The position numbers were made by a program, and so were the translations under genes. From Hemiscyllium ocellatum (lineage: Eukaryota), in the NCBI RefSeq assembly GCF_020745735.1, contig NC_083403.1, positions 74,681,003 through 74,745,002 on the forward strand: a DNA stretch of 64,000 bases, in the 5' to 3' direction. Shown piece after piece: positions 1-60,719 of this stretch (positions are counted from its first letter, which is position 1; every line of letters starts with the position of its first letter). Under the pieces are notes generated by a model. That model was not told the DNA's origin and made no database searches. It saw only the letters and a list, made by a program, of their open reading frames with translations.

Positions 1-82
1 ACAAACTGGCTAAAGAACTACAATTGAAAATGTGTTGCTGGTCAAAGCACAGCAGGCCAGGCAGCATCTCAGGAATAGAGAA

Positions 83-6906: not shown

Positions 6907-7085
6907 CTGGGCTCGATTGGTCGGGGCGGATCGGTGTTCTCTGGGCTCGATTGGTCGGTGCGGATGGACGTCCTCTGGGCTCCATGGATCGGTGTTCTCT
7001 GGGCTCGATTGGTCGGTGCGGATGGACGTCCTCTGGGCTCCATGGATCGGTGCGGATCGGTGATCTCTGGGCTCCATTGATCGGC
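6907..7085. repeat. GC-rich minisatellite immediately upstream of the HINT3 ATG (58-bp unit, 2 exact copies plus partial copies)
   Basis: ggatcggtgttctctgggctcgattggtcggtgcggatggacgtcctctgggctccat at 6928-6985 and 6986-7043, with partial or variant copies on both sides. Contains reverse CCAAT boxes (GATTGG) and a GGGGCGGA GC box. Confidence 0.9.
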
Positions 7086-7094
7086 GCTGTTGCC

Positions 7095-7259
7095 ATGGCG
7101 GCGGTTGGTGTCGGGGATGATGGGGACACTGTGGGCCCAGTTGCGGCCGCAGAAGGATCTGAGGCCGGGGCTTCGGGAGCGGCCTATCCGGAATTTGATA
7201 AAAAATGCATCTTTTGTAGAATCGGGAATAGAGAGGAGTCGGTGGATTTGCTGCATTGG
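7095..7259 (+). CDS. HINT3: HINT3 coding exon 1
   Basis: gccATGG Kozak context in a CpG-rich region; MAAVG...[21 protein letters not shown]; donor TGG|GTGAGG, phase 0. Confidence 0.9.
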
Positions 7260-10200
7260 GTGAGGGGGCGGAAGTGTTTGAAACATTTATTTCCTGTCAT
7301 GATTTGGAGATGCCGGTGTTAGACTGGGGTGTACAAAGTTAAAAATCACACAACACCAGGTTATAGTCCAACAGGTTTAATTGGAAGCACACCAGCGACG
7401 CTCCTTTCATGAAAGAAGTGAAACTATCACTGTATTCTAACAGATGAAAGGCTTAACAAACAATCAATTTTTCAATGTATAATTTCAGTTACATCACACT
7501 GTAAATATTTGCTATAAATTCTGTGTTAGGATTGAGCCCTCCACTATCACCTGATGAAGAAGCGATGCTCCTAAAGCTACTGTGCTTCCAATTAAACCTG
7601 TTGGACTATAACCTGGTGTTGTGTGATTTTTAACTTTATTTCCTGTGACTGTTTAAAGAAAAGCATGTGGAGGCGCAGATGTTGGACTGGGGAGGGCAAA
7701 GTCACAAATCACACAACACCAGGTTATTGTCCAACAGGTTTATTTGGAAGCACTAGTTCAGAATGCTGCTCCTTCATCAGGTGGTTGTGGAGTATAAGAT
7801 CGTAGGACACAGAATTTATAGCAAAAGTTTGCAGTGTGATGTAACTGAAATTATATATTGAAAAATACTTGGATTGTTTGTTAAGTCGCTGATCTTTTAG
7901 AATGGGCATGCAGAACATTCTTAATGTTACATTCTCATGTGAACTTTAACTATGTTGGCCCAGATAATGCACTGCAGGTGAGAGATTGTCTGTGCCCCAA
8001 TGTTCAGACTGATTCTAATCTAAAAATTGGATTTACATATTCTTACATGGATTCATACAATTTTTGAGCAAAATAATGTGTAAGTCTGCAAGTACAAATT
8101 CACCCACAAACTTTGTATGTGTGTGTGTGAGAAAACAAAATGTATTTGTGGGTAAGATGGTGGTACGGCCCTGACAACATTCACAGGCATTAGTACTGAA
8201 GACTTAAGCCCAATGAACTTGCCAGTTCTCTGGCCAAACTGTCTCAGTACAATTACAACATCTACCCAACAATGTGGAAAATTGCCCAGGTACACATATT
8301 GTCCTGTACACAAAAAAAAGGACAAATCCAACCCGGCTAATGACCAGCCCATCAATCTACTCTTGATCATCAGTAAAGTGATAGAAGGTGCCATCAACAG
8401 CAGCTGCTCAGCAATAACCTGCTCGGCAATGCCCAGTTTGGGTTCAACCAGGGCCATTCAGCTCTTGACCTCATTAAACCATTGGTTCAAATGTGGGCAA
8501 AAGAGCTGCATTCCAGAGGCGAGGTGAGAATGATATCCCTTGACATCCAGACTGCATTCAACCAGGGTGTTGCATTAAGGAGCCCAAGCAAAACTGGAAG
8601 CAATGGGAAGCAGGGTGCAAACTCTCAGCTGGTTGGACTTGTACCTGACATAAAGGAAGATGGTTGTAGTTGTTGGTGATCAGTCATCTCAGCTCTAGAA
8701 CATCACAGCAGGAGTTCCTTAGGGTGATTGCACAATATTTAGAATCATTTGAGATTCATCAGATTCTGCATCAATCCAAGTTCAAATGCACCTGGATAAT
8801 GACAGGTTTTCACTGACAAGTGGCAAGTAATATTTGTGACATGTTGCCTTCAGGCTGCCTTCTTGAACCATTGCAGTCCATTTGGTGCAGGCAGATCCAC
8901 AGTTCTATTAGGAAAATCATTATAGGATCTTGTCCGAGCAACATTAAAGGAACAGTGATATATTTGCCTGGGAGAAGCAATGGCCTAGTGATGTTTTGCT
9001 AGACTGTAAATCTAGAAACTGAGCTACTGTTCCAGGGAACCTAGTTCAAATCTTGCCATGGCAGATGGCGGAATCTCAGTTCAATAAATATTTTGGTTTA
9101 GGGTTTAGTAACGCCCATGAAATCATTATCAATTATCAGGGAAAGACCTATCTGGTTCACTAATGTCCTTTAGGGAAGGAGCTCTGTTATTCTCACCTGG
9201 TCTGGCCAATGTGTGACTCCAGATCTATAACAATATGGTTGATGCTTAACTGCCCTCCAGGCAATTAGAGGTTGGCAATAAATGCTGGCCTAGCCAGAGA
9301 TGCCCACATCCCATGACTGACTGAAAAGAAAATTCAGAGTGAGGCTAATGGCTTAGAAATGAAGTAAACTTGTAGGTAGTGATGTTCCCCTGTATTTGGT
9401 AAATCTTGTATATGATATATACTGCTGCTACTGTGCCTCAGTAAAAGGATTGAATATTGAAGGTACTCCATGTGGTGGGAGTCACATAGACTGCTTTGAC
9501 CTAACGCTATGAAGCTTTTAGAGTGCTGAAGCTGCAGCCATCCAAGTGGTCAGGAGAATTCAGTCATGCCAATGTGTACCTTGAATACGGTGGTGAAGTT
9601 TAGGGAGTTAGCAAGCAACTTTCCCAATGCAGGATCCCTCATCTCTGAAACAAAACAGAAGTTCCAGGAAAATCTCAGCAGGTCTGGCAGCATCTGTGAA
9701 ATCAGACTTCATCGGGTCCAGTGACCCTTCCTCTGAACTGGTTAACTCTGATTTCATAGATGCTGCCAGACCAGCTGAGCTCTTCCAGCAACTTCTGTTT
9801 TTGTTTCTGGTTTACAGCATCCGCAGTACTTTTGGTTTTTATTTCCTGAGTTTCTGATCTGTTCTTGTAGCCACAATAGTTATATAGCTGGACAACTTCA
9901 GTTTCTGATCAATGGCAAACCACAAAATGTTAATAATCAAGGATTCAGCGATGGTAATACAAACTGAATGTCAAGTGATGATGGTTTAGATTCTCCCTTG
10001 TTGGAGGTAATCCATGGCTGGCACTTGTGAGCCCTGTTGTCTTACTGTATATTGACACTTACTGCTGCACTATCTGAGGAGTCACAAATGGTGCTGAATG
10101 CTACATTTGCAATCATCAATGATCCTTCCCACTTCTAACTTTGTGATACAAGAAAGGTAATTGAAATAGATAATGATGGACCAGGAGACAACCCTGAGGA

Positions 10201-13200
10201 ACTCTTGCAGGGATGTTTCAAGACTGAGGTTATTGATCTGGAAAAACCACAATGATTTTCCTTTATACAAGCAATATCTCCAAACAGTGGAAAGTTTTCC
10301 TGATTCCAATGACTCCAGTTTGGCTAGGGCTCCTTAATGCCCCAGTTGGTCAAATACTACCTTGGTATCAAGGACAACCACTTCTACCTCATCTCTGGAG
10401 TTCAAATCTTTTGCACATGTTTGTATCAATGCTGTAATGAAGTCAGGAGCTGAGTGGTGCCGAAAGCCAAATTAAGAACCAGCAGATTATTGCTTAGTGC
10501 TGCTTGATAGCATGGTGGATGACCCTTTTCATCATTTTGCTGATGATCTAGAGTTGACTGATGGGGTGATAATTGGCTGGTTGGATTTTTCCTGCTTTGT
10601 GTGGACAACTGCTTCACATGATTGGTATTAGAATTGCAGTTTTGTTATGGCACTAAAGGAGACCATTCACTTCATTGGCACTAAGCTAAAATGGTGCAGT
10701 CACAATCTTCCTTTGCTACATAATCCTTCACATTGGTTTCTTTCAAATAGTCATTTAAAGCACTCCAGAGCGCCAAAACTGAATCTGCCCCACATCTAGG
10801 CAGTGCGTTCCAGACCCTAATATCTCATCGTGGGAAAAAAGTTCTCTCTCATCTTGCATTTACTTCTTTTACAAAGACACTAAATCTGTGCCCTGTGGGT
10901 CTTGATTATATTATGAATGGGAATAGGTTCTCCAACTTTGGGCAACTAATCTGATAAACCTTCAACTAAAAATAATTTACAATTACATTTACATTTAGAA
11001 TATTTACAAATCATAATGCAGCATTTTGCATTGTGTGGAAGCCTCACTTTCAAAAGAATCCTTTACAACTCTTTATAGGGTAGTTGCCCAAGTTGAAGGG
11101 GAAGCCAAGGACGGAAAAAAAGCCCAGTCAAACAGCTAGATTATATAGAGCATTTTGAAATTGAAGAGGGATCTACAAAATAGACAGAAACTTCCCACTT
11201 AACTAAATTAGTTCAGCTCCAACAATACTCAGGAAGCCCAACATCATCCAGGTCAGAACATGATTGGCACCCTATCTGCAACTTTAAACATTCAATCCTT
11301 ATAATGCCAGTGCCTGATGACAGCTGCACCATAGCAGCCTGCAAGACACCTTCGAAACCACCTTCCTGACCTGCAACCTTTATCACTTACAGGAACAAGA
11401 GCATGGTATACTACAAACAACATTTTATCTTCCAAGTCAGACATGATTTTGACTTGAAACTGTATTGCTGTCCCTCTATGAGTGCTGGACCAAAATCGAA
11501 GAATCCCCTCCCTCCATCATGTGGTTTCAGCAGTTCAAAAACTCATCTCTCTGCTATTTTGAGGACAGTTAGAGATGGACATTAAATGCTGGCCTGGCTA
11601 GTGAAATCCTATAAATGAATAAAAGAAAGTATATGCTATGATGGTAGACCTAACCACTCCCAGCAATTCAGATCTTGAATGAATGGAGAATTTTGCTTTT
11701 ATATTTTAACCAGCTGTATCAAATGGATATATAGCTGAGAAATTAAAAATAATTATGACCAAAAGACCACATTTATTTCTTAAGTGACATGATCTTCATT
11801 AAGTAAGTCATCAGAGATATTAAAATGCTAACTTGTTTTTGTGCAGGATGACCAGTTTGCTTGCTTTAGGGACATTCGCCCTGGTGCGCCCCATCATTAT
11901 CTTGTTGTACCAAGAAAACACATTGCAAATTGCAAGTCTCTGAAGAAGGAGCATATATCAGTAGGTGAGATTCCATTCACTTTGTTGTTCAGATCATATA
12001 ACAACACTTCATTATCTTTCATTTGAACTGTGCTTGTAGAGGCTTTACAAATATATTTTGTGAACGTACTTCAAAAATACAGCTCTTTGGATGAACTCTG
12101 ATAGGCCAAAGAGCAAGTTAAAATGCAAGAGATGCATTAAGTCTTAAATATAAATGATTCGTTTGGTGATATGATTGTGTTATGGTCACATCTGAAAATT
12201 CTATTTAATTTCCATTTCCAGCACAAGCTTCTGCTAGCACCCTTGTCTCGTAAACAGCTTCTGTTGAATTATAGTTTACCTAAATACCCCAGTATGTGGA
12301 TTGCATATGTGGCAATATTGATTTATTTTTCCTTGTGTAATATTTGATGCTTTGTAGTATCAGCAGTAGTATGACCTTTTGTTTACACAGAATGAGGGAT
12401 GTATTCTGGTTGGAATGGCGCACAAGCTACAGTATTTGTCTTCAGTGTGCTGAGTACTTGTCTTCAGTGATCATTTTCAGTAATTTGAATCACATTTAGC
12501 AAACCCAATTATCTGTGCATAATATTGCACTGTCTTGGATGGACTAATAACAAAGTGGAGGGATATTAAATTGATCTTTTTCACTTGTGGGCATGGGCAT
12601 CATTGTTGTGCCAGCATTTATTGTCTGGTGAGCTACCTTCTTGAACCATCACAATTCATATGCTGTAGTTTGACCCAAAATGCCCTTGGGGAGGGAATTC
12701 AGAATTTTGACCGAGTGACGGTCGCAGAACCGCAATATATTTCCGTCAGGATGCTGAGTGGCTTGGAGGGCAAATTGCAGATGTGGTGTTCCCGTGTTAT
12801 TTGCTGCCCTTGTCCTTCTCGACAGAAGTGGTCAGGGGTTTGGAAGGATCTTCCATGAACTTCTGCAATGTATCTTGTAGATAGTACACATTGCTGCTGA
12901 GCATTGCCCTTGGAGGGAGTGATTGCTTGTAGATAGAGTGCTGCTTTGTCCTGGATGCTGTCAAGCTTCTTGTTGGAGTAGCACCTATCCAGGCAAGTGG
13001 GGAGTATTCCATTAAACTCCTGACTTGCACGTTGTCGATGGTGGACAGGCTTTGGGGAGTCGGGTGGTGAATTACTTGCTGCAGAATTCCTAGCCTCTGA
13101 TCTGCTGTTTGTGTTTATGTGATGAGTCCAGTTGACTTTCTGGTTGCTGGTAACCTGAAGGATGTTGAGAGTGGGGAATGATGGTGTAGTAGTGTTGGTG

Positions 13201-15962
13201 ACACTAATGAATGTCGAAGGGTGATGATTACATTATCTCTCATTGGAGATGATCATTGCCTGACATTTGTGTGGAGTGAAAGTTACTTACTATTTGCCAG
13301 CCCAGTCTGGATATTGTCTGGATCTTGTGGTATTTCAGCATGGACTGCTTCAGTATTTGAGGAGTTACAATTGGTGCTAAATATTGTGCACTCATTGACG
13401 AACATTTCCACTTCTGACCTCATGATGGAGGGAACGGATAAAACAGCTGAAGTTGGTTTGGCTGAGGATACCACACTGGGGAACTCTTGCAGAGATGTTC
13501 TGGAGCTGAAATGATTGATCTCCAACAACCATGACCATTTTCCTATGTGTCAGGTATGAGATCATCCAGTGAAGAGTTTGCCACCAGTACCCATCGATTC
13601 CAGTTTTGCTCGGGTGCTTTGCCATACTCAACTGAATGTGGACTATAACTGTCACCTCACCAATGTTCGTGTTTGAACCAATGCTGTAATGAGGTCAGGA
13701 ACTGAGTGGCCCTGGTGGATCCCAAACTGGGTGTCACTGAACAGGTTATTGCTGAGTAAGTGCTGCTTAATTGCATTGTTGATGTCACCGGCCATCACTT
13801 TACTGATGATTGAAAATAAACTGATAGGGTGGCAATTGGCTGGTTTGGATTTGTTCTGTTTTTTGTGTACGGAGCAGTTAGGCAATTTTCCACATTCTTA
13901 TTTAAAATACAAAGCAGACTTGTGTAAGCCTTTGGATGCAATATTAATTTTCTCCTGTTTGATTTTGCCGTGTTTTGCTGTTGTGACTGCTGTCTGCTCT
14001 GTGTTAGCATTTCAGAGGGACGAGATGATCAGTGATCATTCAGTTTAACTCCTGTCCTAATGTTGTCATTACTAGGTACTGCCTTTATTTGTGGGCTACT
14101 TAATTTTGCCAGTGTCCCAGTAGTAGGAATAAGATGTGGTAAGGTACCTTATTGACCCATTGCCTGCGTATGCCTGGAAAGTGATTGAACAACTGGCTGT
14201 TAAAATGGGAGAGGACTATGTTCTAAATTATGAAAAGTAAATTGTAGTTTTACATTATTTGTTTTTATTTTACATGTTGCTTTTAGTGTACATGCTTTTT
14301 GGTTATGTTATGCTACAACTAATTACAAAATTGTTTTAATGAATAGTTCAAAAGATGGTGAACATTGGAAAAAGTGTACTGCAACAAAATGGCATGAATG
14401 ACCTGGCAGATGTAAGGTATGTACATACTCCAGAATATAAAAGGGGTGCTTGATAACCAAATATGATTCTGAAAAAGTTATGGTTATGACATTTGTTTGT
14501 TTGATAGCTACCTTTGGTTTTTTTTATGTAATCTTCCAAAAAGGCATGCACAAAGCTCCGACCATTTAAAAATAATAAACCTTGATTTAGTGAATATTTA
14601 AGTTGAATTGTGTGAAGCAACATTAATTGAAATGTGTTGGTATTCACTTTGTAGCTGAGCAAATTATATTTGCTTACGGAAGCTAGCACACAGTTACTGT
14701 GAGAAGTATTGCCTATTTACACGCTACTCGCAGGCACGTGCTGTGATGTAATCTACTGAATAATTATTCCCTCTGTCCAACTAAACATTCTGTAAAGGAC
14801 TGCAAATGGCAATAACAAAATAGTATTAAAATAACACCCAGCACATTAACATCTCTTCGTTTTTAATTTTACAATAAACATTGAAGTTACCTATAACTTT
14901 GGTTGCATTATTTTCACAAGTTTATTATTTAAATTACACTGAAGCTACAATTTTTAACATGAATAAATTTAATATTTTCTGGATGAATTTAATTGCCTTA
15001 GTTCAGCTTTCTCTTTGAAGCTTTATGCTGTGTTCTTTGTGCTATCCCAGATTATCATCAGAATTGTTACAAAAGTATTGGATTTGTTTACAGGCTGGGC
15101 TTTCACCTGCCCCCATTCTGTACAATAACTCACTTGCACTTGCACGTATTGGCTCCAGCCAGTCAGATGGGATTTATATCGAGAATGGTTTACCGAGTTA
15201 ATTCCTACTGGTTTATTACGGTAAGTATATTGTCTCTGTTGTTCATTATATGATAGGTGAAAATGTAAGTCAATTTACACTATGACCTTATTGAGATATG
15301 CTCTTCTTAATGTTAGTGAACACTCAGTTTCAGTCTTTAGTCTGTCCTTAATGACACTGGAGGAACAATTCTTGTTTTTAGAAACCCAGGTATGAGATAA
15401 GAAAGCAAGAGGGCGCATAAAGAGGAATTGAGACCACAATCAGACCAGCCATGATCTTTTGAATGGTGGAACAGGCTACCAAAGCTGATTGGCCTCCTCC
15501 TATGTTCCAGATAAATTCCTGACCTCAATTACTATTTCTTGATATATTCTGTAGACACTGAAAAAGGCTTTTAATCAAAATTTATTGTACTTGATTTCCA
15601 TACTTTGAAGTTAAATGGTTCTATACTTGCGTGAAACCACCTGGCTTTTATTTTCTAGGCAATTGCCAAATCAAACATAATAATGGGTTGTTTTATGCTG
15701 CATGCTTACTGGAAACTGGATTGAAATTGCCCAAATTCATCTTGCATAGGCAATACAGAGAGGAAATTATAATGTCAACAGTGCCAGCTATGTTTTAAAA
15801 TAATTCTCTGAAAGATTCAACAAAGATCACACTGCTTCACCCAGTATCAATTATAGATTATGCTTTGCGTACATTTATCTCACTTATTACATTGTAGACA
15901 TTTTCCCCCACCCTAAGGTTGACAAATTGATTGAAAATCTAAAGTCTCTTCCGGACGAGTGA
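7095..15962 (+). CDS. HINT3: Histidine triad nucleotide-binding protein 3, whole gene span; join(7095..7259,11847..11964,14347..14416,15094..15220,15918..15962), 174 aa
   Basis: Five GT-AG exons join in frame (165+118+70+127+45 = 525 nt). The product has [32 protein letters not shown], the HIT motif HLHLH and NSYWFIT. It lies upstream of TRMT11, as in other vertebrates. Confidence 0.95.
7298..7634. mobile_element. Short fold-back Penelope-type terminal-repeat element in HINT3 intron 1 (same family as 26011-27565)
   Basis: Inverted ends (aaagttaaaaatcacacaacaccaggttatagtccaacagg / its reverse complement), flanked by the 12-bp direct repeat tttatttcctgt at 7286-7297 and 7635-7646. Confidence 0.8.
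7665..8150 (-). mobile_element. Older Penelope-type terminal-repeat fragment
   Basis: Diverged homology to 26011-26420, including a decayed hammerhead (ccttcatcaggtg). Confidence 0.7.
11847..11964 (+). CDS. HINT3: HINT3 exon 2
   Basis: tttttgtgcag| [39 protein letters not shown] |gtgaga; 118 nt. Confidence 0.95.
12570..13900 (-). mobile_element. L2/CR1-clade LINE (second family), RT and 3' end, degraded; related pieces at about 8165-8840 (+), 9330-10610 (-), 35545-35790 (+), 39255-41160 (+) and 47270-47950 (+)
   Basis: [55 protein letters not shown] on the - strand. Confidence 0.75.
14347..14416 (+). CDS. HINT3: HINT3 exon 3
   Basis: aatag| (V)[22 protein letters not shown](R) |gtatgt; 70 nt; phases match both neighbouring exons. 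Confidence 0.9.
15094..15220 (+). CDS. HINT3: HINT3 exon 4 (HIT motif)
   Basis: tttacag| [42 protein letters not shown] |gtaagt; 127 nt. Confidence 0.95.
15918..15962 (+). CDS. HINT3: HINT3 terminal coding exon
   Basis: ttttcccccaccctaag| [14 protein letters not shown] (TGA 15960-15962); resembles the vertebrate HINT3 C-terminus. Confidence 0.85.
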   Translation, partial: VDKLIENLKSLPDE

Positions 15963-24135: not shown

Positions 24136-24988
24136 GTGTCAAAACGTGGTGCTGGAAAAAGCACTGTAGGTTAGGCAGCATCCCAGCAGCAGGAGCTGAC
24201 TTTTCAGGCATAAGCCCATCATCAGGAATGTGGAGGGGGAAGGGGGCTGAGAGATAAATGGGGGGTGGGGTGGGGCTGGGGTGAAGTTGAGTGGGATGGC
24301 TATAGGTGAAAGGTGATTGTGATAGGTTGGTGAGAAGGGTGGAGCACATAGGTGGGAAGGAAGATGGACAGATCAGATAGGTCAAGAGGATAGTATCTAG
24401 TTGGGACAAGGCGGGGGTTGGGAAGATCGGGGAACTGGTGAAGTCCATGTGATTCTCAGATCCCGAGGTTGTTCTTCCAGGTGGCGGGTGGCTTTGATTT
24501 GTTGGTAGAGGAGGGCCAGTGCAGGAGTAGGATTCCCACCACTTTATTGGAAATTGTCACGTAGTCAGGGTGGTTTGGTTGTAAAAATAATGGACCTCTA
24601 TTGGTACAGTAAACCTTTATTGATTCTATACATTACTGCCGGCAGGTTTTGGCAAATCTTACAATACTTTCAAGGTCATTGACCCGAAACATTTACTGTT
24701 TCTTTTTCATAGATATTACCAAACCCGCTGGGTGTTTCCAGCATTTTCCAATTCTATCTTAGCAGCATCCGCATTAGTTTGTTTGCATTGGAAAATATAT
24801 TCTGTACATAGTTGAAAACATTTGTTTCTTTTGCTACAGATTCACATTTCAGGTCATAAATACAATCAGATTTTGATGTGTCGAGTCTTTTTTTCAAAAT
24901 AAGGCTTAAAATATGCGTAGCTTCACTGCAGTGCAACCACAATCAAAAAGTGCAACTTCACAAAGTCTCATTTCCCACAAATCTATCT

Positions 24989-25444
24989 TCACTCAAGCAG
25001 CGTGATGAGAGCGCGATCATCCCTTCCTTGCCAAAGCATTTCCCCTTCAAAATGAACCAGACCGTGTTTTCTCGCTCGTAGCAGGATTCCCACCACTTTA
25101 TTGGAAATTGTCACGTAGGCATCAAACAATCTCCCGAAAGTTATGCAGATGTTCCCGCCTGGCCCGGCTTCTCCGTACCTTCTAATAACATAAAGCAACT
25201 CTTCGACTTCTTTCCCGATGTGGGTATGTGCGTCTTTACCTCTCTGGTCTGTTTTGGATCCCTTTTTGGGACGCCCGTATTCTTCATCCCCTCTCTGCAA
25301 GCGCAGAGTGACCGCGTGGGAGCCGCTGAAAGGATTGGACCTTTGGTACTGCCTGTGGTTGTCGGCCCATTCCTGCCACTTCTTCCTCAGGCTTGCATTT
25401 CCGTCCTGTCCTGGCATTTGGCGATTGCCTCCACTCGCTGCCAT
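24989..25444 (-). CDS. Short actin-binding Rho-activating protein (ABRA/STARS)-like protein, Costars domain, single coding exon, 151 aa
   Basis: Intact ORF with ABRA C-terminal hallmarks: KKWQEWADNH..NPFS, GDEEYGRPKKG, TFGRLFDAYVTISNKVVGILLRARKHGLVHFEGEMLWQGRDD. aaaATGG Kozak context, in-frame stops just upstream, CpG-rich. Confidence 0.9.
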   Translation of the reverse strand: MAASGGNRQMPGQDGNASLRKKWQEWADNHRQYQRSNPFSGSHAVTLRLQRGDEEYGRPKKGSKTDQRGKDAHTHIGKEVEELLYVIRRYGEAGPGGNICITFGRLFDAYVTISNKVVGILLRARKHGLVHFEGEMLWQGRDDRALITLLE

Positions 25445-26058
25445 TTTTATTCCCGCACATTATCAGGATCCCCTAATCCTGGAAGGTCATCGCAGTCATT
25501 TCTGACCCTATAACAAACAGCGGCCGATTCGCTTTTCACATTATTCACTTACAGTGAAGATTTTTCTGGATGTTTTTGCTGTTAAACGCCCACACCAAAC
25601 TGCAGACTTGGACACCCTATCGGACGTCCTGCTGCATGTCACACTCGGCCGGGATCATTAGGATTGACGGCTTCATAAACCGACAGGAGAAACATTTCAT
25701 CTGGACACCAATAGGCTGAGCCGAGGGTGAGAGCGCCGTCTGTCCATTGGATAATGCAACTTGTTGCAATCGATCAGTGTCACCAATACTAAATGATACT
25801 GTGTCTCCCCAAGTTGTGGATGAGATATTCAGTGTTTCGTTTTTTTTGTGTACTCTGGAGTGCTATTACGCACAATTCTCACCACTAAAATCACTGTGAC
25901 GTTTCTGTTTTTTTAAAAAAAAAGGAAACCAGTAACCACCACCAGTAAAAACAATGCAAGAGCAAATTATTGCAGATGCTGGAATCTGTACTGAAACCCA
26001 AAAAAACTGCTAAAAATCACACAACACCAGGTTATAGTCCAACAGGTTTAATTGGAAG

Positions 26059-31329: not shown

Positions 31330-31640
31330 AGAATTGATTGACGTAAAAGGAAGCCAATGTGAGAAGGTGATTGTTGATGTCGAGGGCGAGTTAGTCCCGG
31401 AACCAAGCGTCGCGGCTCTGGCGGAGCACGGGATGGTTTTGTTGACGGACGGGAACATGGCACTTTCCAGGGGGAACGTGTGTCGGAGGTTTTTGCTGCT
31501 TTTAGCTCAAGAAAACCTGGAATTCCGGCTCCCGGTGAGTCCGAGTCGGGTCCGGGTTCTGGCCGCCCGGTGATAACCGGAGATGGGATTGAACTCTCGG
31601 TCAGACCTGGCACCGCGGATTCACTTCCAGAACAAGGGGA
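31330..31640 (+). promoter_or_regulatory. CpG-rich TRMT11 promoter / first-exon region
   Basis: Local CpG enrichment; CRE-like TGACGTAA, GGAAG and CCAAT motifs at about 31338-31360. Confidence 0.55.
31457..31534 (+). CDS. TRMT11: TRMT11 exon 1
   Basis: aacATGG; [26 protein letters not shown] |gtgagt; CpG-rich. Confidence 0.92.
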
Positions 31641-34600
31641 GAATTTGCAGCGTTTTGTGTTTCAAATTTCCAGCAGCTGCAGGAGTCAGTTTTTCCAGCA
31701 AGGAAGGAGGCCACTCGGTCCATCGTGACTGCTCCTGGCATAAGACATCCACCTGTTCCAAAACAGTTCAAAGAATTGTTTAACTGCGGATGCTGGAAAT
31801 CTGAAACAAAAACAAAGTGCTGGAGGAACTCTGCATTGTCTGACAACATATGTGGAAGAAAAATGTTAACTGTTTTTCCAGCAATTTCTTTTTTTGATTC
31901 AAAACCCATTTTCCAGCACTTGACCTATGGCTTGTATATTATGGCAATTCATGTGGTCATCTCAGTATTTTCTGAATGTCTGTAGGGCCCCTGCTTGTTC
32001 TATTCTTTCAGTATTCTAGATCCCCACAACCCGTTTGGGTGAAAAAACACCTCAAATCCCCTCTAAACCAGCTCCTTAGCATAAAAGTTTGGCCCTTGGA
32101 TATTGACCTCTCAACTGAGGGGAAAGATTTCTCACTGTGTACCTTGTCTCTGTCCCTCAATTTTGTACTCTACAAACAGATTCCAACCCCCTCCAAGGAA
32201 AAACACCAACTCTTTGTAGTTTTTCTTCATAGCTGAATAATTCCCTGCCCAGATAACACCCTGGGGAATCTTGTCTCCATCCTCTTGAATGCAATCACAC
32301 CCTTCATATTGTGTAACAACCAGAACTTTTCACAGTATTCCATCTGTGGCCTAACTGGTGTTCTGTAGAGCTGTATCATAAGCTCTTTGCTCTTCAGTGC
32401 CTCCACTAACAAAGGCAACGGTCACCATAATCACCTTCTATTTCCATAGATCATTTGCTGAATATAGTTCATGCTCCAGGTGCTTGCAGTCTCTCTGCAT
32501 CTCATTCAAATTCACATGAAGAGTGAGCTCTAATAACAATCGCTTCACACAACCATAGTTGGGTGGCTGATCATGTCTCTGCTACAGCTCTGGTGCTTTC
32601 CCAAGAGGTGTAAATTTCACCCACACCCTGTGATGCAGAGCTGGTTTCCCTCTGTGAGGATTTCCTGCTTTCTTGGCTATCAAGACTTAACTCGAGACCT
32701 TTTGCTAGTGGGGCCCTACAAAAAAGGTGATATAAGACTCAGGACTGCGAAATGGTCTTGACTCAAAAGAAAGGAGCAGCACCTTAGTTTAACCACTTCT
32801 CCTTGTTAGTTAAGTCGTATTCATGATGATTTGATGAATTGCAGTATCATAACAATAAAAAAACCTTTCTATCTAAATTAATAAGTAATTCTTATACTGT
32901 TGTAAACTTTGTAGATGGTGCATTCACATATTGCGTGAACAGATATTTTGTTTGCTTCGAGTACTGTTATTTCTCCTCTGACACTTCAGCCCTACAGATG
33001 CATGATCTCTCTAATGTGTATGAAAAGTTTTACATGAGCATAATTTGAGCTGTTCATTTAGAGGAATGAGAGGTAATCTCATTGAAAGAAATAGGGTTTC
33101 TTAAGGGTCTTGATAGGGTTAACTCTAAGATGGTGGTGCCATTGATGGGAGAATCTTGGACCAGAGGGGACAGTCTCAGAATAAAGGGATGCCAATTTAA
33201 AATTGAGATCAGGAGGAATTTCTTTAAACTCTTGAAACTCTTTAAAACTCTTTGTCACAGTGAGCTGTGAGGACAGAGAGACCTTGTGAATGTTTAACTT
33301 CGAGATAGGTAAAATCCTTGATTCCTCGTTTGATCAACGATCTGGGGAAAGGGCAGGAAAGTGCATGCGAAGAATGTTGGATCCGCCATAATCCTATTGA
33401 ATGGCAAAGCAGGCTTGAGAGGCCATAAGGCTTGCTATTTCCTGTGGTCAGCATAATTTTGATCAGTGTGCATATATGTATTATCTAGCACAAGATCTGT
33501 CCTTATGATGCAAAATGGTTAGTAACTGCTGGTGCAACCGGGTCCAGGAATGGACCGATTCACCTTGTGTGCCATTCATTCATTATTCCAAACAGGAACC
33601 ATCCTCACTGTCTATGCTTTTGTAATTCAATGTTGATGATATGAACATCTGAAGAAATTTTAACGTCACCTTATTGCTGGTTGCTAAGCCACGAGATTCA
33701 GTCTCTTGGCTAGAGTGATTGTCAAGACCACCTACAAAGGTAGGGAGAATCATACAAATTTTAATGTTTTTTATCCTTTAATGCAATAATGTAGCTGTCA
33801 TTAAGCACACCTAAACTGTACCAAACAAAAAGATGTTGGAGGGATATTGAAACTCCGATCAGAAAGTCTTATTTGGTAATCAAGGAAGTACTTGTTAAGT
33901 GAGTATTCTTTTAATTCAGAAGGGTTTTGATTCGACAGCTTTTCAGGGTTTTAATATGCGCCATTGCCAACCATATATCTTTTTGTTACAGGAACTAAAA
34001 TCCCTGTTTTCTCTTTGTGGTGGACAATTAAAATGTGAAGAAAGCTTTGATGAAAAGGTATGGTACATCCTTAACTTTTACCACTAAATACACAGATAAT
34101 CATATCACACTACACTTGTTAGTGATTGGATTTGTTATATTTATCCTGAGAAATCTCAAGTTATATTACAGTCTTTGTTTGTTTGGTATGTTGTCATGTT
34201 CTGTAACATATATACTAATTAGTATGTGAGGTTGTCTTTTTATATTAGTGATTGTGCAATAATCTGTTTGTATCACAAAAGTCACAAAAGCATGTTAAAG
34301 CTTCTTGATAGAAAAGTGTAAGCAACGTTCAATGGCTGTTGCTGACTATCATTTTCCACACTCATACATATACTGCTACCCTCTGCATTCCAGGTATGAT
34401 TGCTCACCTAATTTTTCAACACATGAAACCTTATCCATGTTCTCCTGGGTCAATTTCCACCTCCTCTACCACCTTACTGATATAATGGATCACATCCTGT
34501 TTAGTACCTGTAAATTAAATAAGGCCAAAAGGTGATATATTTCAGACGTTCAATGCTTGAAATAAAAGCAGCGAAGAATGGCAGTGCAAGTTAGATAACC

Positions 34601-37600
34601 TGTATTGAAGGAAGTATAGATGTTAAAATTTGAAGCCTTATGAAACGTTGTGGTGAAGAATTAATTTCTTGATAGAGTATATTCCTCAGATCTTATATGA
34701 GGTGTTACAAGAGAATTAGAGCTGTCTAAGTAACAATGCAATTTATTTCCCCCAAAGACTGCCAATTGCTTGTAACAGGGACCTTGCTAAATGTGAAAAG
34801 CTGCCTTCTTTCTCGGCTGATAGTCAGAAATCCATATCTTTCAGTCATTTGGTTTTATGTTGGAACAAATTTCCTTGCCTGTGCTTGAACTGATTTTCCA
34901 TACTATACTCTGTCCTGGCAGTAGGTTGTGTATGCGTCGCTTGCGCTGGGTCTTGATTGATGGTTTGTTTAGAAGATCTTGAATTCTAATTAATATCTGC
35001 TTAATAATAATCGCAAGTCTCCAATCCTTATTTTCCTCTAGAATGAATAGACACACAATACCAGAGAGATACACATTTGGTGGAATATTGGGGGCTCAAG
35101 TTCACACTTTGGTGACGATGAGGGGTAGTTATCTTCAAAGAACATTCAAACCTTATACTTCCCACCTTTGCATAACATTGCCTTTTCACTTGGAATAACA
35201 CATTCCCAGTTCATTATGTTTAAAATACCATCTGGATTCTACTGCAACAAAGCCAAAAGGGTGATGCTTTCCCTAGGCATCTTTTTCTTGTTCAGATCGA
35301 CTCAATTCCAGGCATAGTTTTACTTCAATAGTCCCCTTCAGTGGGGCGGAGATGGGGAAGGGCAGTTATAGATTTATAGAGATGTACAGCATAGAAACAG
35401 ACTCTTCGGTCCAACCCGTCCATGCTGACCAGATATCCCAACCCAATCTAGTCCCACCTGCCAGCAGTTTCTCCTGGGGACAGAGCTAAAGCAACTGTTT
35501 TTTCTTCTGCTCCCTCTTTCTCATGTGACTCATTTGCATCTATGAACAACGCCACCTGCAAGTTCCCCTCTAAGCCACTCACCATCGTGTCTTGAAATAT
35601 ATAGCCATTCTTTACTGTTGCTGAGTCAAAATCCTGGAATCCCTCCCTAATGGCATTGTTGGGCAATCTATAGCACATGGACTGTAGCTGTTCAAAAAGG
35701 AGCTCACCACCACCTTCTCAAGGGCAACTAGGGATAGGCAATAAACGGTAGCCAGCCAGCAATGCCCACATCCCATGAAAAAATAAAAAAGAGAAAAACT
35801 GATTCACTGGTGATGGGAGTGGGGTGGATGGATTATAGGTGCTGTGAGACAGTACATTCCCTTAGCCTCGATTTATTCAGCTCAGCCTCATTGTTAAGGG
35901 CTTCCAGCATCACTGCCACTATGCTCTGCAACTCTTATAAATTGTCAGCTTTGTCACCACCCTCCTGATTTTAAGGCTGCCCTTAAAACACGTTTTCAAC
36001 CAAGCTTTCGGTTACTGTAATAATGTTTCCTGTGGTTTGGTGTATATTTTCCATTTGCTTCAGTGAGATGCCATGGGGCATTACTCTCATTAATAGATAC
36101 TATGTGAATCTTGTATTTGTACTTTAAGGAGCTGTAATGCCACTGATATCAAATCTTATGTGATAAGACAAATAATGAAAAAAATACAGAAGTCACAAGC
36201 CCTTGCATCTTCAGCTATAGTTCATCTAGAAATGAACAGGATTTGGTATCACAAGTGTCCAAGTGGATGTGCAGTTCATAGAGTCATGGAGATGTACAGC
36301 ATGGAAACAGACCCTTCGGTCCAACTTGTCCATGCCAACCAGATATCCCAACCCAATCTAGTCCCACCTGCCAACACCTGACACATATCCCTCCAAACCC
36401 TTGTTATTCATACACTCATCCAGGTGCCTTTTAAATGTTGCAGTTATACCAGCCTCCACCACTTCCTCTGACAGCTCATTCCACATGCGTGCCACCCTCT
36501 GCGTGAAAAAGTTGCCCCTTACATCTCTCTCATATCTTTCCCCTCTCACCCTAAACCTATGCCCTCTAGTTCTGAACTTCCCCACCCCAGGGAAAAGACT
36601 TTGTCTATTTACCCTAGCCAAGTCCCCTCATGATTTTATAAACCTTGAAAAGGTCAACCCTCAACCTCCGACACTCCAGGGAAAACAGCCCCAGCCTATT
36701 CAGCCTCTTCCTATAGCTCAAATCCTCCAATCCTGGCAACATCCTTGTAAATCTTTTCTGAACCTTTTCAAGTTTCACAACATCTTTCCGATAGGAAGGA
36801 GACCAGAATTGCACGTATGTTGTTATTCGATTTAGACTTGGTTCGTGATTCATGGAGCACCTTGAGTTTCTGTGGGATTTGACACTAGAACTGTTACAAA
36901 TTTATTTTTTATTCATTTATGGGATGTGTTTTGCTGGCTAGGCCAGCATTTGTTACCCATTCCTAATTGTCCAGAGGGTAGTTAAGAGTCAACCATGTTC
37001 CCTTGGGTTTGGAGTCACATGTTGGCCAGACCATGTAAGGATAGCAGTTTCCTTCCCTAAAGGACATTAGTGAGCTAGATGAGGTTTTCCAACAAGTGAC
37101 AATGCTTTTATAATCATTAGACTTTTAATTCCACATTTCTGTTAAATTCCGATTCACCGTCTGCCTATGTGGGATTCAAACGCAGATCACTGGAACATTA
37201 CCAGGATCTCTGAATAAGTAATTCAGTGATAATACCACTAGACGGTCACCTCTTAAAATCATCTATGTAATATATCAGATTGTCTGTCTGATTAACAAGG
37301 CTTCTCTACCTCTTGCATTTGAAGTTTTATTTCTAGTTATATTTTTTGATATAGTTTTCACTTTCTTCTAAATAGGAGTGAAAAGTTGTAATTTAGGAAA
37401 TGTTTGCAGTTTTAAAGCACATTTTATTGCAGGGTGATGAATGTAGATGTTCAAATTCCTGTAACATTCAACAAAATTTACAAATTTCCGAGATGTGAGG
37501 TTCAGTTTAATGCCAACATATTTTAATTTAATTCATGTTCACTAAAGTTCTTTTAAAAGCTTCATCAACGTTCCTGACATTCCAAGTATCTTAATGTATA

Positions 37601-40600
37601 AGTTTATTTTTCAGTCCCCGTTCTGGATTCTACACATTCCCTCTGAGGACATGGCAAAAAGAGTCATGAAACGGACAGTGTGTGCCAAGTAGGTAATTCA
37701 TGTCATTCTTATTGATGATCAGAAGTTGGAGAACAATGTTTTCCTCTCTAGTTGTTTATATGTTGCAAAATGACCTATGCTAGTAATGCTAGTTCCTGGC
37801 ATTGGGTCTCTGGTATTCATTATGGTTGGTTGCTGTGAAACATTGTTAAAAATGGGTTGTGTAACACAGTGCATGATACTTGTGGGTAAGGATCAGAGTC
37901 AATAGTTTGGGTGTTGTTGGAAAATCAAAGCATCTGTTATTGCCCAGAATATGGCATTGGTGTTCAGTTCAGTGCATTAATATAAATATGTATTTCAAGC
38001 AATTATGTTTTAGTGCATAGTGGCAAATCCAACTGGCAGCTTTAATTATTTGTTTTCTTGAGTAACCATTGAAAAATTATTTTTGCTTGTCTTCCTGCTC
38101 TCTTCCATTTGTTTTAGCATTTTCAGTTCTAAAAATCCATTTACTGTTTTCCCTTTATTTATTTAGTCTGTCGGGTTATCCAAAGCTCAAATGTTTAAGC
38201 ACAGCTGCACTTTTGTAAAACTTGAATTCCAAGTATTTTCCTGAACTGACATTGGGCTAGAGATTACTGGCATATAGTTATGTGACTTGTCCTTGTTGTT
38301 GCTTTGTTACACCATTACCGATGTTACACCAGTGATGCTAAACAATATATTTGTTTTGTACTTTGTAAATCTCTTTCTGGAAGACTTATCACTAATCTGC
38401 TAACTTGTTTTCTAAACTTTGTTTCCATTTGATTTTTGTCAGATGCTTTTGTATCTTACTGAACTATATTAGTTGTTTACCAGATTTATTAAATTTAGTT
38501 TTTGAAAGTAACAGTCCTTTCCTTGATGGGTGAGAAATGTAGATTGTTTGTGTTTTGAAAAACAATTCCCATTTTAACTATGATATTGGGATTGTTAAAA
38601 TAGCCACATATTATGATGTTCCCACATATCTGCAGAATGTTCAGAAAAATCTTTGAGACAGGTAATTTGTCCAGGTTCCCTTCTTTTTCTTAACACTCTT
38701 TCTGGGTAGAAATAGTCAATCCAATGCACTGGAAGATACTCTGGCAATGTAATAGAATTATTCTGTTAAACTACCATATAACCTTTATATCCTTGTCTAA
38801 CCGTAACCACAAATATATCCCCTTGGTTCAGTTGGTAGCACTACGCCTAAGGAAGGAGGATGTGGGTGCACATGTAACTCTGGCATTTGAGCACAAAAAT
38901 CAAGCCTGATATTTCAGTTTGTTACTGAGTGGGTTACTGCACTGTCAAGAGGTGCTTGTTTTTTGAATGGCTCATTAAACTGAGGGTCTGTGTGTCCACT
39001 CAGGTGAGCATAATTCATCCCATCGCATCCCACTTTCACATTAGGAATGCCCTCTATCATGTTGGATAGTGCTATCACTGTGCTAAATGCGACAGACTAG
39101 CAGACTAACAGGTCGAGCAACTCAAGACTGGCATCCAGGAGGCACTTGACGTTTCGGATATAAGAAAGGCTCCTTGGATGCTGCCTGACCTGCTGCACTT
39201 TTCCAGCAACACATTTTTCAGCTCTGATCTCTAGCATCTGCAGTCCTCACTTTATCCAGGAGGCACTGTGGGCCATCAACAACAGAATTGTACTCCAACA
39301 CAAACTGTAACCTCATGGCTTGGCATATCCCCTGAACAACCATTACTATCAAGCCAGAGATCAATCGTGGTTCAATGAACAGTGCAGGAAGGCATGCCAG
39401 GAGCAGCACCAGACAAAGCTAAAAGTGAGGTGTGAAAACCTGTTGAAGCTACCAAATAGGACTACTTGTGTGCCAAGTAGCATAAGCAGCAAGTGATAGA
39501 CAGAGTGATGTGATCCCACGTAGAGATGTACAGCATGGAAACCGACCCTTCGGTCCAACCTGTCCATGCCAACCAGATATCCCAACCCAATCTAGTCCCA
39601 CCTGCCAGCACCCGGCCCATTTCTCTCCAAACCCTCTTAAATGTTGCAATTGTACCAGCCTCCACCACATCCTCTGTCAGCTCATTTCATACACGTACCA
39701 CTCTGTGTGAAAAAGTTGCCCCTTAGGTCTCTCTTATATCTTTCCCCTCTCACCCTAAACCTATGCCCTTTCGTTCTGGACTCCCCGACCCATCTAATGG
39801 ATCAGACCTAAGCTCTGCAGTCCTGCCACATCCAGTTGTGGATTGTGGTGGACAATTAAACAACACAGTGGAAGCGAAGACTACACATATATCCCAATTG
39901 TAAATGGCGGAAGAACCCAATACATCAGTGAAAAAGATAAAGCTGTACATTCTAAGCAATCTTCAGCCAGACGTGCCATTTAGATGATCCACGTGGGCCT
40001 CCTTCATTGATCCCAGCACCACAGGTACCAGATTTCAGCCAATTCGAGTCACTGCATGTGATATCAAGAAACTTTTGGGGGTACTGGAGACAGAAAGCTT
40101 ATGGGCCCTGACAACATTCTGCCAATAGTACCGAAGATTTGTGCTCCAGAACTTGCCGTTCCCCTAGCCAAGCTGTTCCAGTGCAGTTACAACACTGGCA
40201 TCTACCTGACAATGTGGAAAATTATCCAGGTATGTCCTGGATTCAAAAAGCAGGGCTAATCCAACCCAGCAACTTATTGCCCATCAGTCTAATCTCAATC
40301 ATCAGTAAAGTAATGGGAGGTGCCATCAGCAGTGTTATCAAGTAGCAATTGCTCAGCAATAACCTGCTCAGAGTCACTCGGTTTGGGTCACCAAGGTCCC
40401 TCGGCTCCAGACCTCATTCTAGCCTTCGTTCAAACATGAACAAAAGAACTGAATTCCAGCAGTGAGGTGAGAATGACAGCCCTTGACATCAAGGCTGCAT
40501 TTGACCGTGTGCAACATCAAAGAACCTTAGCAAAACTGGAATCAATGGTTATCCAGTAAAACCTTCCACTGGTTTGCGTCATGCCTGACACATTGGGTGC

Positions 40601-43600
40601 CACGATGGCTCAGTGGTTAGTACTGTTGCCTCAGTGGCAGGGACCTGGGTTCAGTTCCAGTCTTGAGCATTTGTCTGTGTGGAATTGACACATTCTCCCT
40701 GTGTTTATGTGGGTTTCCTCCAGGTGCTCCAGTTTCCTCCCACAGTGCAAAGATTGTGCAGATTAGGTGAATTGGCAATGCTGACTTGCCCATCGTGTTC
40801 AGGGTTGTGTAGGTTAGGTGTATTAGTCAAGAAACATGTGGAGTAACAGGGTGGGGGAATGGATCTGGGGTGGGCTATTCTTTGGAGGGTAGGTGTGGAC
40901 TTGTTGGGCCAAATAGCCTGTTTTCACACTGTAGGGATTCAATGATCCTATGATCGGAAAATGGTTGTGGTTGTTGGGGGTCAGTCACCTCAGCTGTAGG
41001 ACATCTCTGCTGGAGTTCCTCAGGGTAGTGTCCTAGACCCAACTATCTTTAGCTGCTTCATCAATGATCTTCCCTCCATCATAAAGTCAAAAGTGGGGAT
41101 GTTCGTGGATGATTGTGCAATGTTCAGCACCATTCATTACCCCTAAAATACCAAAGCACTTGTTACGTTTCTTTTACAAGACTGTTTAAATGTTCTGTAC
41201 TTTTCTGTTTTACATGATTGTAAAGTTTGGAACATTGCCTCTTAATTTTCTTTGTGAGTTTTTCATTTCATTGTTTGATGTCCCTTTCCCTTTCTGATGT
41301 ACTGCTACCACATACTTTATTTCTCCTCTTCTCTGATAATATTTTTACACTGGTCATTTCAGGCACACCTTCAATTTCTGTTCTAATTGTTTTATTTGCC
41401 TAACTGTTCCTTCCTAGCTTCAAACATGAATTTTACTTGCAACTTCCAGACATTGAATTAGTTTAAAACATCCCTCATTGCACTGTTTGCCGTCTGAGCA
41501 AATAAATGTTTATGTTGGATTAGTCAAAGCATTTCAATTCAATTCAAGTCTGTCATCTTCCCTTGTTCTAGGATTCATTTCAATGTGCCAAGAATGTGAA
41601 CCCTTCTCTCTCGCATTGGCTACAGCCTCATTTTTCCTTCAATTTTCCATGTGGCAGCCAATGACTATTGAGGTACCACAGGGATCAGTACTTGGAGCCC
41701 AGCTATTCACTGTATATGATTTACATAAGGGAACTAAATTTAATGTCCCAAGTTTGCAGATGACATAAAGCTGGGTGGGATGGTGAACTGTGAAGAGTAT
41801 ACAGAGATGCAAACAGGAAAGCAGATGATCTGAGTGATATTTGATTGGGAAAGGGAGAGTTGCAACATGTCTTGAGGTACACTAGTCGCTGAATGTAGCA
41901 TGCTGACATAGAGATAGTGAAGAAGACCAATGTAATATTGGCCTTTATAGTGAGAGGATTCAAGTACAGGAGTAGGAGTGTCTTGCTGCATTTGTACAAG
42001 CCCTCGGTGAGACCACACCTGGACCATTGTGTGCAGTTTTGGTCTCATTGTCTGAGGAAGGATCTTCTGGCTTTGGAGGGAGTGCAATGAAGGTTTACCA
42101 GATTGATTCCTGAGATGTTTGAAGAGAGCATGGATTAGTTAGAACTATATTCACTTTGGTTTAGAAGAATGAGGGGGAATTAAGCTGGTACAATTTGCAA
42201 TATTTAAATGGCATCTAGATGGGTGTATGAATTGGAAGGGTTTAGAGGGATATGGACCAAGAGCTGGTAAAATGGGACTAGATTAGGTTACGATATCTGG
42301 TCAGAATGGACGAGTTGGACCGAAAGATTTGTTTCTGTGCTGTACATCTCTGTGACTGTATGACTCTAAACCTATAAAATTCTAACAGACCTAGACAGGG
42401 TAAATGAGAGACAGATGCTTCAAGTGACTGGAGAGTCTCAGCCTAAGGATACTGGGTAGACCATTTCAGACTGAGATGAGAAATTTCTTTTACCCTGAGT
42501 GTGACAAACCTGTGGAATTCTCTGTGACAAAAAGAAGTCAAGGTCAAAACATTGAATGTTTTCAAGAAGGAATTAGAAGTGGTTCTTAGGGCTACAGGGA
42601 TCAAAGAATATGGGAATAAAGTTGGAACATCATCAGCTGTGATCATATTGAATAGTGAAGCAGGTGAAAAGGGTCAAAAGGGCAGTAGTGTGTCGCAAAG
42701 GATTACTCCAATACTTTTTTCAGTTATCGATTAGAGCTCTGCCATGTCCCATTGACTGGGCCCTACTGGCTACTGTTGGACATTTAGAGGCTTGATTACT
42801 GTCCTGGTGGCAGGGGGAGGCATGGATTTCTTGCGAACTGAGGCTTTTCTTTGATCTGAGCTATAGTAAACCCATCACAAAGTGCAGCTCTTGCCATCAG
42901 TCCCAGTTCCTAATGTCTTTGCATTCCCAACTGAACTATGTAAACAAAATTAAGGTGTGAAGCTAGAACTGTTCCTCATTGCCTCATTTTGTATATAACC
43001 AATGGCCCATTTTCCATTGGTTATATACAAATTCTTTTCCCCAACATCATCACCTTGTGGAAGCACTGAGGATTTTCAGATAACGTGAAGGGGCATTGTT
43101 CCAGGTAGGTTGTTTGCTGCACCCTTTCTCTGACCTTTGTGCCTTGATGTGGGTGTTGCCTTAGTGAAAGCATTGGGAAATTTGGTCCTTTTATCTTTTA
43201 AGGAAAACTTTTACAATATGATGGTTAACGAGAATTACTAATGGAATTACAGTTATGGTATTGCTACTGGTGTTTCAGCTAGATCACTGTATGGCATCAG
43301 AATCTGTGTTTGAAGAAGTTGTTTTGGACACAACAACCATGCTTTACTTTGCAGATCAATATTTGAGTTGTGGGGTCAAGGAAGAACACATGAAGAACTT
43401 TATAACTCACTGAAAAATTATCCTGCAGACAGAATGGTGTGTATGCACAGGAACCATCTACATTGCCTTGTGTATATTGCTAAAACTATAGGTCTGAATT
43501 AAATTAACCATATTTATTTTTTCTACTTCAGATCCCATTCCTTCAATGTGGTTCAACCTATCAGATAACGGTTTATGCGTTCAATAAAACACTGACACAA

Positions 43601-60380: not shown

Positions 60381-60719
60381 GTAAGTGTTTATTTTTATAT
60401 TTCAGGATAATATATCTTCTTACTTTAGAGCTTTACAATAGCCTGTGATTTAAAAAATCTGTCTTTTTCGTATCTGTCCTAAATGTGGATTCGGTTGGCT
60501 AGGCCAGGATTCATTGCTCATATTTAACTGGGAGATGGTAGTGAGTTGCTACAGTAATTTGGGAAGATGCTACAAATTAAAGAGTAGAGGCAAGGCAAGA
60601 GAGAAAGTTGTTAATAATGGAAATGTTAAACAAACCATGACTGGAAGGAATAAAGAATACAAATCCAAGACTAAATCGATAGTTAAGGCTAAGGATACAA
60701 AAAAGAATTAAATGCTAGA

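Follow-up and report, generated by a model that had tools for sequence, protein, structure and literature searches.

The 151-aa protein encoded between HINT3 and TRMT11 in the shark Hemiscyllium ocellatum is very probably a functional jawed-vertebrate 'short' member of the ABRA/STARS (Ms1) family, an old duplicate that would work through a mechanism like that of the STARS C-terminus. The DNA analyzed was a stretch of 64,000 nucleotides (the window), which contains no N letters. Within it, the short gene is an intact, stand-alone ABRA-family gene; it is neither the second exon of a longer gene nor a retrocopy. It is the positional ortholog, at the TRMT11/HINT3 locus, of ~150-aa genes in chimaera, sharks, gar, teleost, alligator and bird. 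By phylogenetic placement, the short genes lie outside the clade of all long ABRAs. The short gene is annotated in many genomes as 'ABRA-like' but is uncharacterized, and we found no description of a short vertebrate ABRA paralog in the literature. The features of the gene, its protein and its neighbors are collected in Table 1.

Table 1. Features of the short ABRA/STARS-family gene, its protein and the flanking genes (nucleotide positions are those of the window; aa positions are those of the short protein)
Feature	Position	Strand	Remarks
HINT3	7095..15250	+	exon 1 7095-7259 (ATG 7095, GT donor after 7259)
42-nt CDS-segment copy	24526..24567	minus	40/42 identical to 25080-25121
Poly-A signal AATAAA, predicted	24616..24621	minus	367 nt past stop codon of short gene
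Short ABRA/STARS-family CDS	24989..25444	minus	complete, single exon, 151 aa + stop, ATG start
CpG-rich upstream stretch	25445..26000	minus	obs/exp 0.7-0.84; putative promoter and 5' UTR; holds the four in-frame stops
TRMT11	31457..60381	+	exon 1 31457-31534 (ATG 31457, GT donor after 31534)
WQxWA...NPFS helix (ABD1 core)	aa ~15-40		
YGRP AT-hook core	aa 55-60		within EYGRPKKGSKT (aa 54-64)
Costars/ABD2 winged helix	aa 72-151		

Assembly GCA_020745735.1 already lists the CDS as a gene in its own right. The start codon lies in a strong Kozak context, ATAAAAATGG (A at -3, G at +4), and is preceded by in-frame stops at -18, -21, -45 and -54, that is, four within 63 nt, with more at -66 and -99. 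No AG dinucleotide occurs in the 15 bases that separate the ATG from the TAA at -18, and hence the reading frame could not be prolonged upstream through a splice acceptor. CpG obs/exp was 0.80 in the ORF vs 0.27 across the window; the CpG-rich stretch as a whole covers ~24.8-26.0 kb, and the HINT3 and TRMT11 promoter islands both reach 0.9. Downstream of the gene there was no A-run of 8 or more, and neither a poly-A nor a target-site scar was present. The original prediction had listed an intact 151-aa single-exon ORF with these start, stop, AG and CpG features and without a poly-A/TSD scar, and every item was found in the DNA.

From its substitution pattern, the short gene is under purifying selection, and it is very probably a functional protein-coding gene. 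Comparison with the chimaera ortholog yielded a dN/dS of 0.15 (dS 1.4), where a value near 1 together with a lack of expression had been named beforehand as speaking against the prediction; in the comparison with alligator, synonymous sites were saturated. The exact short protein was absent from the Logan transcript contigs and present only in the genome assembly. No CArG box was found near the short gene (the whole window has 3 vs 7 expected by chance), and the 2 kb upstream of the gene held neither a MEF2 consensus nor a CArG box. In this respect the shark short gene is unlike the mammalian STARS promoter, which has been described with CArG/MEF2 sites.

Several repeats were observed in the window. 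The segment from which the 42-nt copy derives (25080-25121) encodes YVTISNKVVGILL, the most conserved peptide of the short protein. The copy lies ~420 nt past the stop codon, just beyond the predicted poly-A site, and carries its own AATAAA (24543-24548); it is absent at the short-gene loci of chimaera, alligator and wrasse. The nearest detected repeat-element match is ~400 nt away from the copy (23793-24126, with a short match to 24190), and no dispersed repeat was found between the two. A tandem array at 6903-7084, with a 34-nt sub-unit and 58- and 92-nt higher-order units (the 58-nt unit perfect over 2.2 copies), sits immediately before the HINT3 start codon (7095), within the CpG island of that gene. 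Reverse-transcriptase (RVT_1) ORF fragments occur at 28512-29386, between the short gene and TRMT11, and at 423-1022, at the start of the window, and related repeat pieces recur at ~20.1-20.6, 23.3-24.1, 36.4-36.8, 39.2-39.9 and 46.1-46.4 kb.

Both flanking genes named in the original prediction were confirmed by exons in the window. The HIT/DcpS_C exons of HINT3 fall within 11832-12023 and 15002-15250, and its probable last exon is near 15.9 kb, beyond the span in Table 1. Further TRMT11 exons were located near 37.6, 43.3, 48.2, 50.8, 55.8, 56.8 and 60.3 kb, and the gene may run past 60381. With the short gene on the minus strand and both neighbors on the plus strand, it is tail-to-tail with HINT3 and head-to-head with TRMT11, the start codons of the short gene and TRMT11 being 6.0 kb apart. 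The arrangement TRMT11(-)/short gene(+)/HINT3(-) was present in all six of the species looked up, namely Chiloscyllium (bamboo shark), Callorhinchus (chimaera), gar, alligator, the wrasse Notolabrus and the bird Psophia. A lack of syntenic orthologs had been named as counting against the prediction, and these six further species, from chimaera to bird, supply them. In shark, chimaera, alligator and wrasse, the short gene has its whole CDS in one exon. In Notolabrus, a TLD-domain (NCOA7-like) gene lies beyond HINT3, corresponding to NCOA7, which lies beyond HINT3 in human; this is what the paralogon argument of the prediction requires, which had relied on NCOA7 near HINT3.

Searching 5.8 billion proteins with the short protein returned 385 matches, of which 120 were listed. 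The top match was a bamboo shark protein (99% identical, 151 aa), followed by proteins of whale shark (87%), basking shark, white shark, houndshark, sevengill shark, skate, ray and chimaera (68%). Proteins of ~150-170 aa were also found in gar, tarpon, eel and many teleosts, and in lungfish, caecilian, frogs, lizards, snakes, alligator and Tasmanian devil; the bird models were 120 aa long and partial. Annotations in more than 30 species give proteins of 148-175 aa with the same start region, and the NCBI name for most of the short orthologs is 'actin-binding Rho-activating protein-like'. The earlier view of a gene 'kept in sharks' was thus too narrow, as the same locus is found in chimaera, gar, teleost, alligator and bird, and ~150-aa orthologs also occur in lungfish, amphibians, squamates and a marsupial. 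Placental proteins were absent from the 120 matches listed (of 385), and the short gene appears to have been lost in placental mammals. We accept as right the claim that an ABRA-like gene is missing from the human HINT3-TRMT11 locus.

The protein consists of the C-terminal part of ABRA, as predicted. Six long ABRA-family proteins (shark, bat, teleost, lamprey, lungfish) served as tblastn queries; their alignment to the ORF was confined to the final ~137 residues, and no coding sequence similar to the N-terminal ~230 residues was found anywhere in the window. The one N-terminal exception was the WQKWA motif of the long ABRAs, which cross-matched the single WQEWA of the short protein. The ORF begins 17 residues ahead of the region common with the long ABRAs, and the stops lie upstream of this point. 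Pfam Costars (PF14705) matched aa 75-150 over its full length (1-76/76, E 4e-31), and the best solved-structure match was ABRA ABD2 (PDB 2KRH, E 1.9e-28, aa 72-151). In alignments of short and long forms, W23, Q34, N37, P38 and F39 were invariant and W26 and S40 nearly so; in the AT-hook-like GRP core before ABD2, Y56 and P59 were invariant and G57 nearly so. Among 40 short-clade proteins there were 34 invariant columns, including W23, NPF(S), Y56, P59 and most of ABD2.

Actin binding by STARS needs residues 234-279 and 346-375, with ABD1 placed at 193-296 and ABD2 at 294-375 (PMC3520124; PMC7922284). The GRP AT-hook at ~residue 279, together with ABD2, binds DNA in vitro, as do Ms1 residues 270-375 (PMC4682817). 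Judged by alignment, the actin-binding and AT-hook/ABD2 regions of STARS all map inside the 151-aa protein. The AF2 model, built on 40 orthologs, had a mean pLDDT of 74.9, rising above 86 over aa 80-150. In it, residues 15-35 form a helix and residues 64-149 a winged helix predicted with confidence; the tip and a linker at 41-50 are disordered. This fits the literature view that ABD1 is unfolded until bound and that ABD2 is the sole folded domain.

Compared with ABRA/STARS/Ms1 (375-410 aa), the short protein shows an end-to-end alignment with the C-terminal ~137 residues at 48-58% identity and has in common with it WQxWA...NPFS, the YGRP core and the whole Costars/ABD2 winged helix. The short protein lacks the ~230-residue N-terminus of ABRA/STARS/Ms1 with its second WQKWA motif, and it differs further by a linker 4 residues shorter, by ISNK vs ISDK and by GKDAH vs AKRAE. 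The short gene also has its own locus (HINT3-TRMT11) and falls outside the long clade. Vertebrate Ms1/STARS has been described as 'just under 400 amino acids' and ~150-residue forms have been reported in insects and nematodes, with the short vertebrate gene unmentioned (PMC4682817). Those invertebrate ~150-residue homologs have the same size and architecture (lead-in, ABD1 core, Costars) as the short protein. The tunicate Clavelina protein (156 aa) is 46% identical over the full length and has ancestral residues in common with the short clade, and mussel family members include 153-aa forms. The invertebrate form is the sole or main family member of its genome, whereas the vertebrate short form coexists with 1-2 long paralogs. 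ABRACL/Costars (81-89 aa) likewise has the Costars winged helix but consists of that domain alone, while the short protein has ~70 more N-terminal residues with the ABD1 and AT-hook motifs; ABRACL is also far more distant, its structure (PDB 2L2O) matching at E 8.4e-5 vs 1.9e-28 for ABRA ABD2. The whole ~135-aa module (WxxW...NPFS lead-in and Costars) was also seen in protists, among them a labyrinthulomycete (representatives include P0197 of Hondaea and P0248/P0266 from MMETSP transcripts), at the C-terminus of 400-650-aa proteins or in proteins of ~150-200 aa.

A FastTree of 187 C-terminal modules, ~100 of them non-vertebrate representatives, placed the vertebrate sequences in one group (support 96), with tunicates nearest outside, and divided this group into a short and a long clade. 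The final IQ-TREE comprised 69 rows and ~155-158 columns; sequences misplaced by long branches had been dropped (an amphipod with a branch length of 10 and a mussel from the first tree, and P0195, P0239 and P0260 from the second). In this tree, the window protein grouped with the chondrichthyan short genes (100/98), and all long forms made up one clade without short genes (98/100), consisting of the shark 360-aa, ray-finned-fish ~350-aa and lungfish 336-aa forms, tetrapod ABRA, teleost 'abrab', three lamprey proteins and one hagfish protein. Vertebrates came together at 82/91 with tunicates outside. Monophyly of the short genes cost 1.5 log-likelihood units and was not rejected (AU p 0.45). 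A forced clade of chondrichthyan short and long forms cost 41.5 units and was rejected (AU p 5.7e-5), which excludes a lineage-specific copy or retrocopy. Over the common region, the shark short protein is 48% identical to the long form of its own species.

The cyclostome long forms fell inside the long clade, so the short/long split would be at least as old as the cyclostome-gnathostome divergence. On these trees, the first vertebrate genome duplication is a better fit for the split than an event confined to gnathostomes. A pre-vertebrate split is possible, because the trees are built on short data and a tunicate protein stood beside the short clade in an early one of them. The claim of an ancient paralog was upheld by the rejection of a shark short-plus-long clade and by the low dN/dS. 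As to the more specific '2R ohnolog', the old paralog stands and a whole-genome duplication is a plausible origin, but the prediction went further than the trees allow in singling out 2R.

The assembly also has, on another contig, a distinct long ABRA-family gene (P0285, 360 aa); that the short gene might be the only ABRA in the genome had been raised as an objection in advance. No genes were called within 10 kb of this Hemiscyllium long form. The shark long form tended to group with the ray-finned-fish ~350-aa form (79/77), and its placement as an ortholog of human ABRA was not rejected (AU p 0.09). Teleost 'abrab' (~410 aa) grouped with tetrapod ABRA (100/95, earlier tree), and its N-terminus is closer to that of tetrapod ABRA. 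Joining abrab to the ray-finned ~350-aa clade was rejected (AU p 0.003), as was joining tetrapod ABRA to all ~350-aa forms without abrab (AU p 0.009), both p values being optimistic as the groups were chosen after the tree. Neither a shark protein of the tetrapod-ABRA/abrab type nor a second long form of a cartilaginous fish appeared among the 120 best matches to a lamprey or a shark query.

Genes labeled 'ABRA' were found to comprise more than one orthology group (P0285 and P0130 in shark; P0296 and others of ~350 aa; P0128/P0125, abrab; P0396/P0126, tetrapod; loci L005 and L006). The 'ABRA' of ~350 aa in ray-finned fishes and in lungfish represents an old paralog of its own, seemingly absent in tetrapods. 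The CDS of the shark long form is a single exon (Carcharodon, 1086 nt and 361 aa; Hemiscyllium, 1083 nt and 360 aa), and introns are present in the long-form genes of bat, Betta and smelt. A Tim17-domain gene (343 aa) encoded on the same strand spans the Carcharodon long form. In lampreys, the long ABRA-family genes number at least three, P0279 (407 aa), P0411 (304 aa) and P0138 (1130 aa, with the ABRA module as its last 150 residues), and hagfish have P0145 and P0417; no short form from cyclostomes was seen among the matches listed.

Beside the Betta ~350-aa gene is a RIMS-family gene of 274 aa, with a C2B domain that matches PDB 2Q3X (E 3e-35); the RIMS identity comes from this PDB sequence search, ESM Atlas having given 'C2' only. 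The neighbor of teleost abrab is a SAM-domain gene (SAMD12 or SAMD10). No genes were called within 10 kb of bat ABRA, and six-frame inspection of its 10-kb downstream flank revealed no obvious TLD exon. In human, ABRA adjoins OXR1, the TLD paralog of NCOA7. The human short gamma-RIMs are RIMS3 (1p34) and RIMS4 (20q13), RIMS2 (8q22) is near ABRA/OXR1 and RIMS1 is on 6q, and these blocks also carry RSPO1-4; the RIMS, TLDc and RSPO genes are markers of one four-fold paralogon. Together, the RIMS-family neighbor in Betta and the human RIMS/RSPO map support the view that the ABRA-family copies lie on separate arms of a single ancient four-fold paralogon.

The short gene would have originated by duplication at or before the base of the vertebrates, most likely in a vertebrate whole-genome duplication, and would later have been lost in placental mammals. 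We infer the whole-genome duplication from the neighbors, the short gene being near a TLD-domain gene, human ABRA by OXR1 and the ~350-aa form by a gamma-RIM. An alternative that deserves weight, although we think it unlikely, is that a small-scale duplication or transposition carried a DNA- or RNA-based copy of the 3' part of ABRA into the HINT3-TRMT11 interval along the vertebrate or the gnathostome stem lineage, or that the short gene is the heir of an ancestral ~150-aa chordate gene from which the long forms are derived. The intronless CDS would suit such an origin, as would the ISNKVVG of the short genes and tunicate vs ISDKVVG in all long forms, and the early tree with the tunicate beside the short clade. 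The OXR1-ABRA adjacency, moreover, comes from the human map only. Forms of ~150 aa exist in tunicates and molluscs, and in insects and nematodes (PMC4682817). Since the shark long form is intronless too, however, the missing introns are uninformative on retroposition, and the short gene bears no poly-A or target-site scar. The vertebrate sequences formed one group in the trees with many outgroups, and the neighbors belong to families of four-fold paralogy (TLD and RIMS), which again speaks for the whole-genome duplication.

In terms of mechanism, the short protein would amount to the actin-binding part of STARS (234-279 and 346-375) plus the AT-hook/ABD2 DNA-binding unit, without the ~230-aa N-terminus. 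Because it keeps the actin-binding parts of STARS, F-actin binding is expected, probably through the disordered ABD1-like helix and the folded winged helix. This binding would shift the G/F-actin balance, release MRTF and activate SRF, and such signaling would be free of whatever regulation or targeting the long N-terminus gives. From the modules retained, we infer a function as an F-actin/MRTF/SRF activator like the STARS C-terminal fragment, as a competitor of the long forms or as a nuclear DNA-binder. The last two of these, competition with long ABRAs at actin/ABLIM sites without signaling or a nuclear role as an AT-hook and winged-helix DNA-binder, are in our estimate improbable, if well short of negligible. 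The GRP core and the whole of ABD2 are kept in the short genes, and DNA binding is documented for the corresponding Ms1 fragment (270-375; PMC4682817). The shortened linker and the GKDAH vs AKRAE difference lie beside the AT-hook, and the second, N-terminal WQKWA motif of the long ABRAs is missing. On the other hand, both regions needed for actin binding by STARS are present and conserved, and the sequence comparisons made gave no sign of activity loss.

It is most improbable that an upstream coding exon was missed and that the ORF is just the final coding exon of a longer gene of the ABRA type. Gar isoform X1 (164 aa) does have an intron and a small extra 5' coding exon, which adds 8 residues before the common MEK start. 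Against such an exon in the shark stand the four in-frame stops and the lack of an AG ahead of the ATG, the lack of ABRA N-terminal similarity throughout the window, including the 6 kb that reach to the TRMT11 promoter, and the independent annotation of more than 30 species at the same length and start region. A non-coding 5' exon of the short gene is possible. A recent retrocopy or decaying pseudogene of the shark long ABRA, suggested by a short, single-exon gene that matches the 3' part of the long form only, has practically no chance of being correct and is refuted by the AU test against its nesting with the shark long form (p 5.7e-5, delta lnL 41.5), the 48% identity to that form, a position kept across jawed vertebrates, the dN/dS of 0.15 and the lack of a poly-A tract.

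Taken more broadly, the jawed vertebrates may have had three ABRA-family ohnologs on three arms of the RSPO/RIMS/TLDc paralogon, a reading that we advance tentatively, as a real possibility. The first would be the short gene at NCOA7-HINT3-TRMT11, a minimal STARS; the second, the ~350-aa form by a gamma-RIM in ray-finned fishes and lungfish, to which the shark long form perhaps belongs; and the third, ABRA proper, made up of tetrapod ABRA and teleost 'abrab' and retained as the sole human copy.

In heart and skeletal muscle, ABRA/STARS couples MRTF/SRF transcription to the dynamics of actin. Research on it has been almost entirely confined to mammals, with their single ABRA gene, and to zebrafish, in which one gene has been taken as the ortholog. 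The loss of an ohnolog in placentals is a common event and the short gene is already present in automatic annotations, so the value of the finding is moderate. The statement that the vertebrate version has 'just under 400 residues' is nevertheless in need of amendment. With a short paralog in relatives of zebrafish, in frogs, reptiles, birds and marsupials, redundancy that is lacking in placentals is possible in non-placental models, and a natural experiment on the role of the long N-terminus is at hand. If the reading with three ohnologs is correct, the short gene would serve as a naturally occurring 'minimal STARS' passing the actin-to-SRF signal without N-terminal regulation, outside or alongside striated muscle, and in zebrafish, frog and chick it could hide the phenotype of an abra knock-out.
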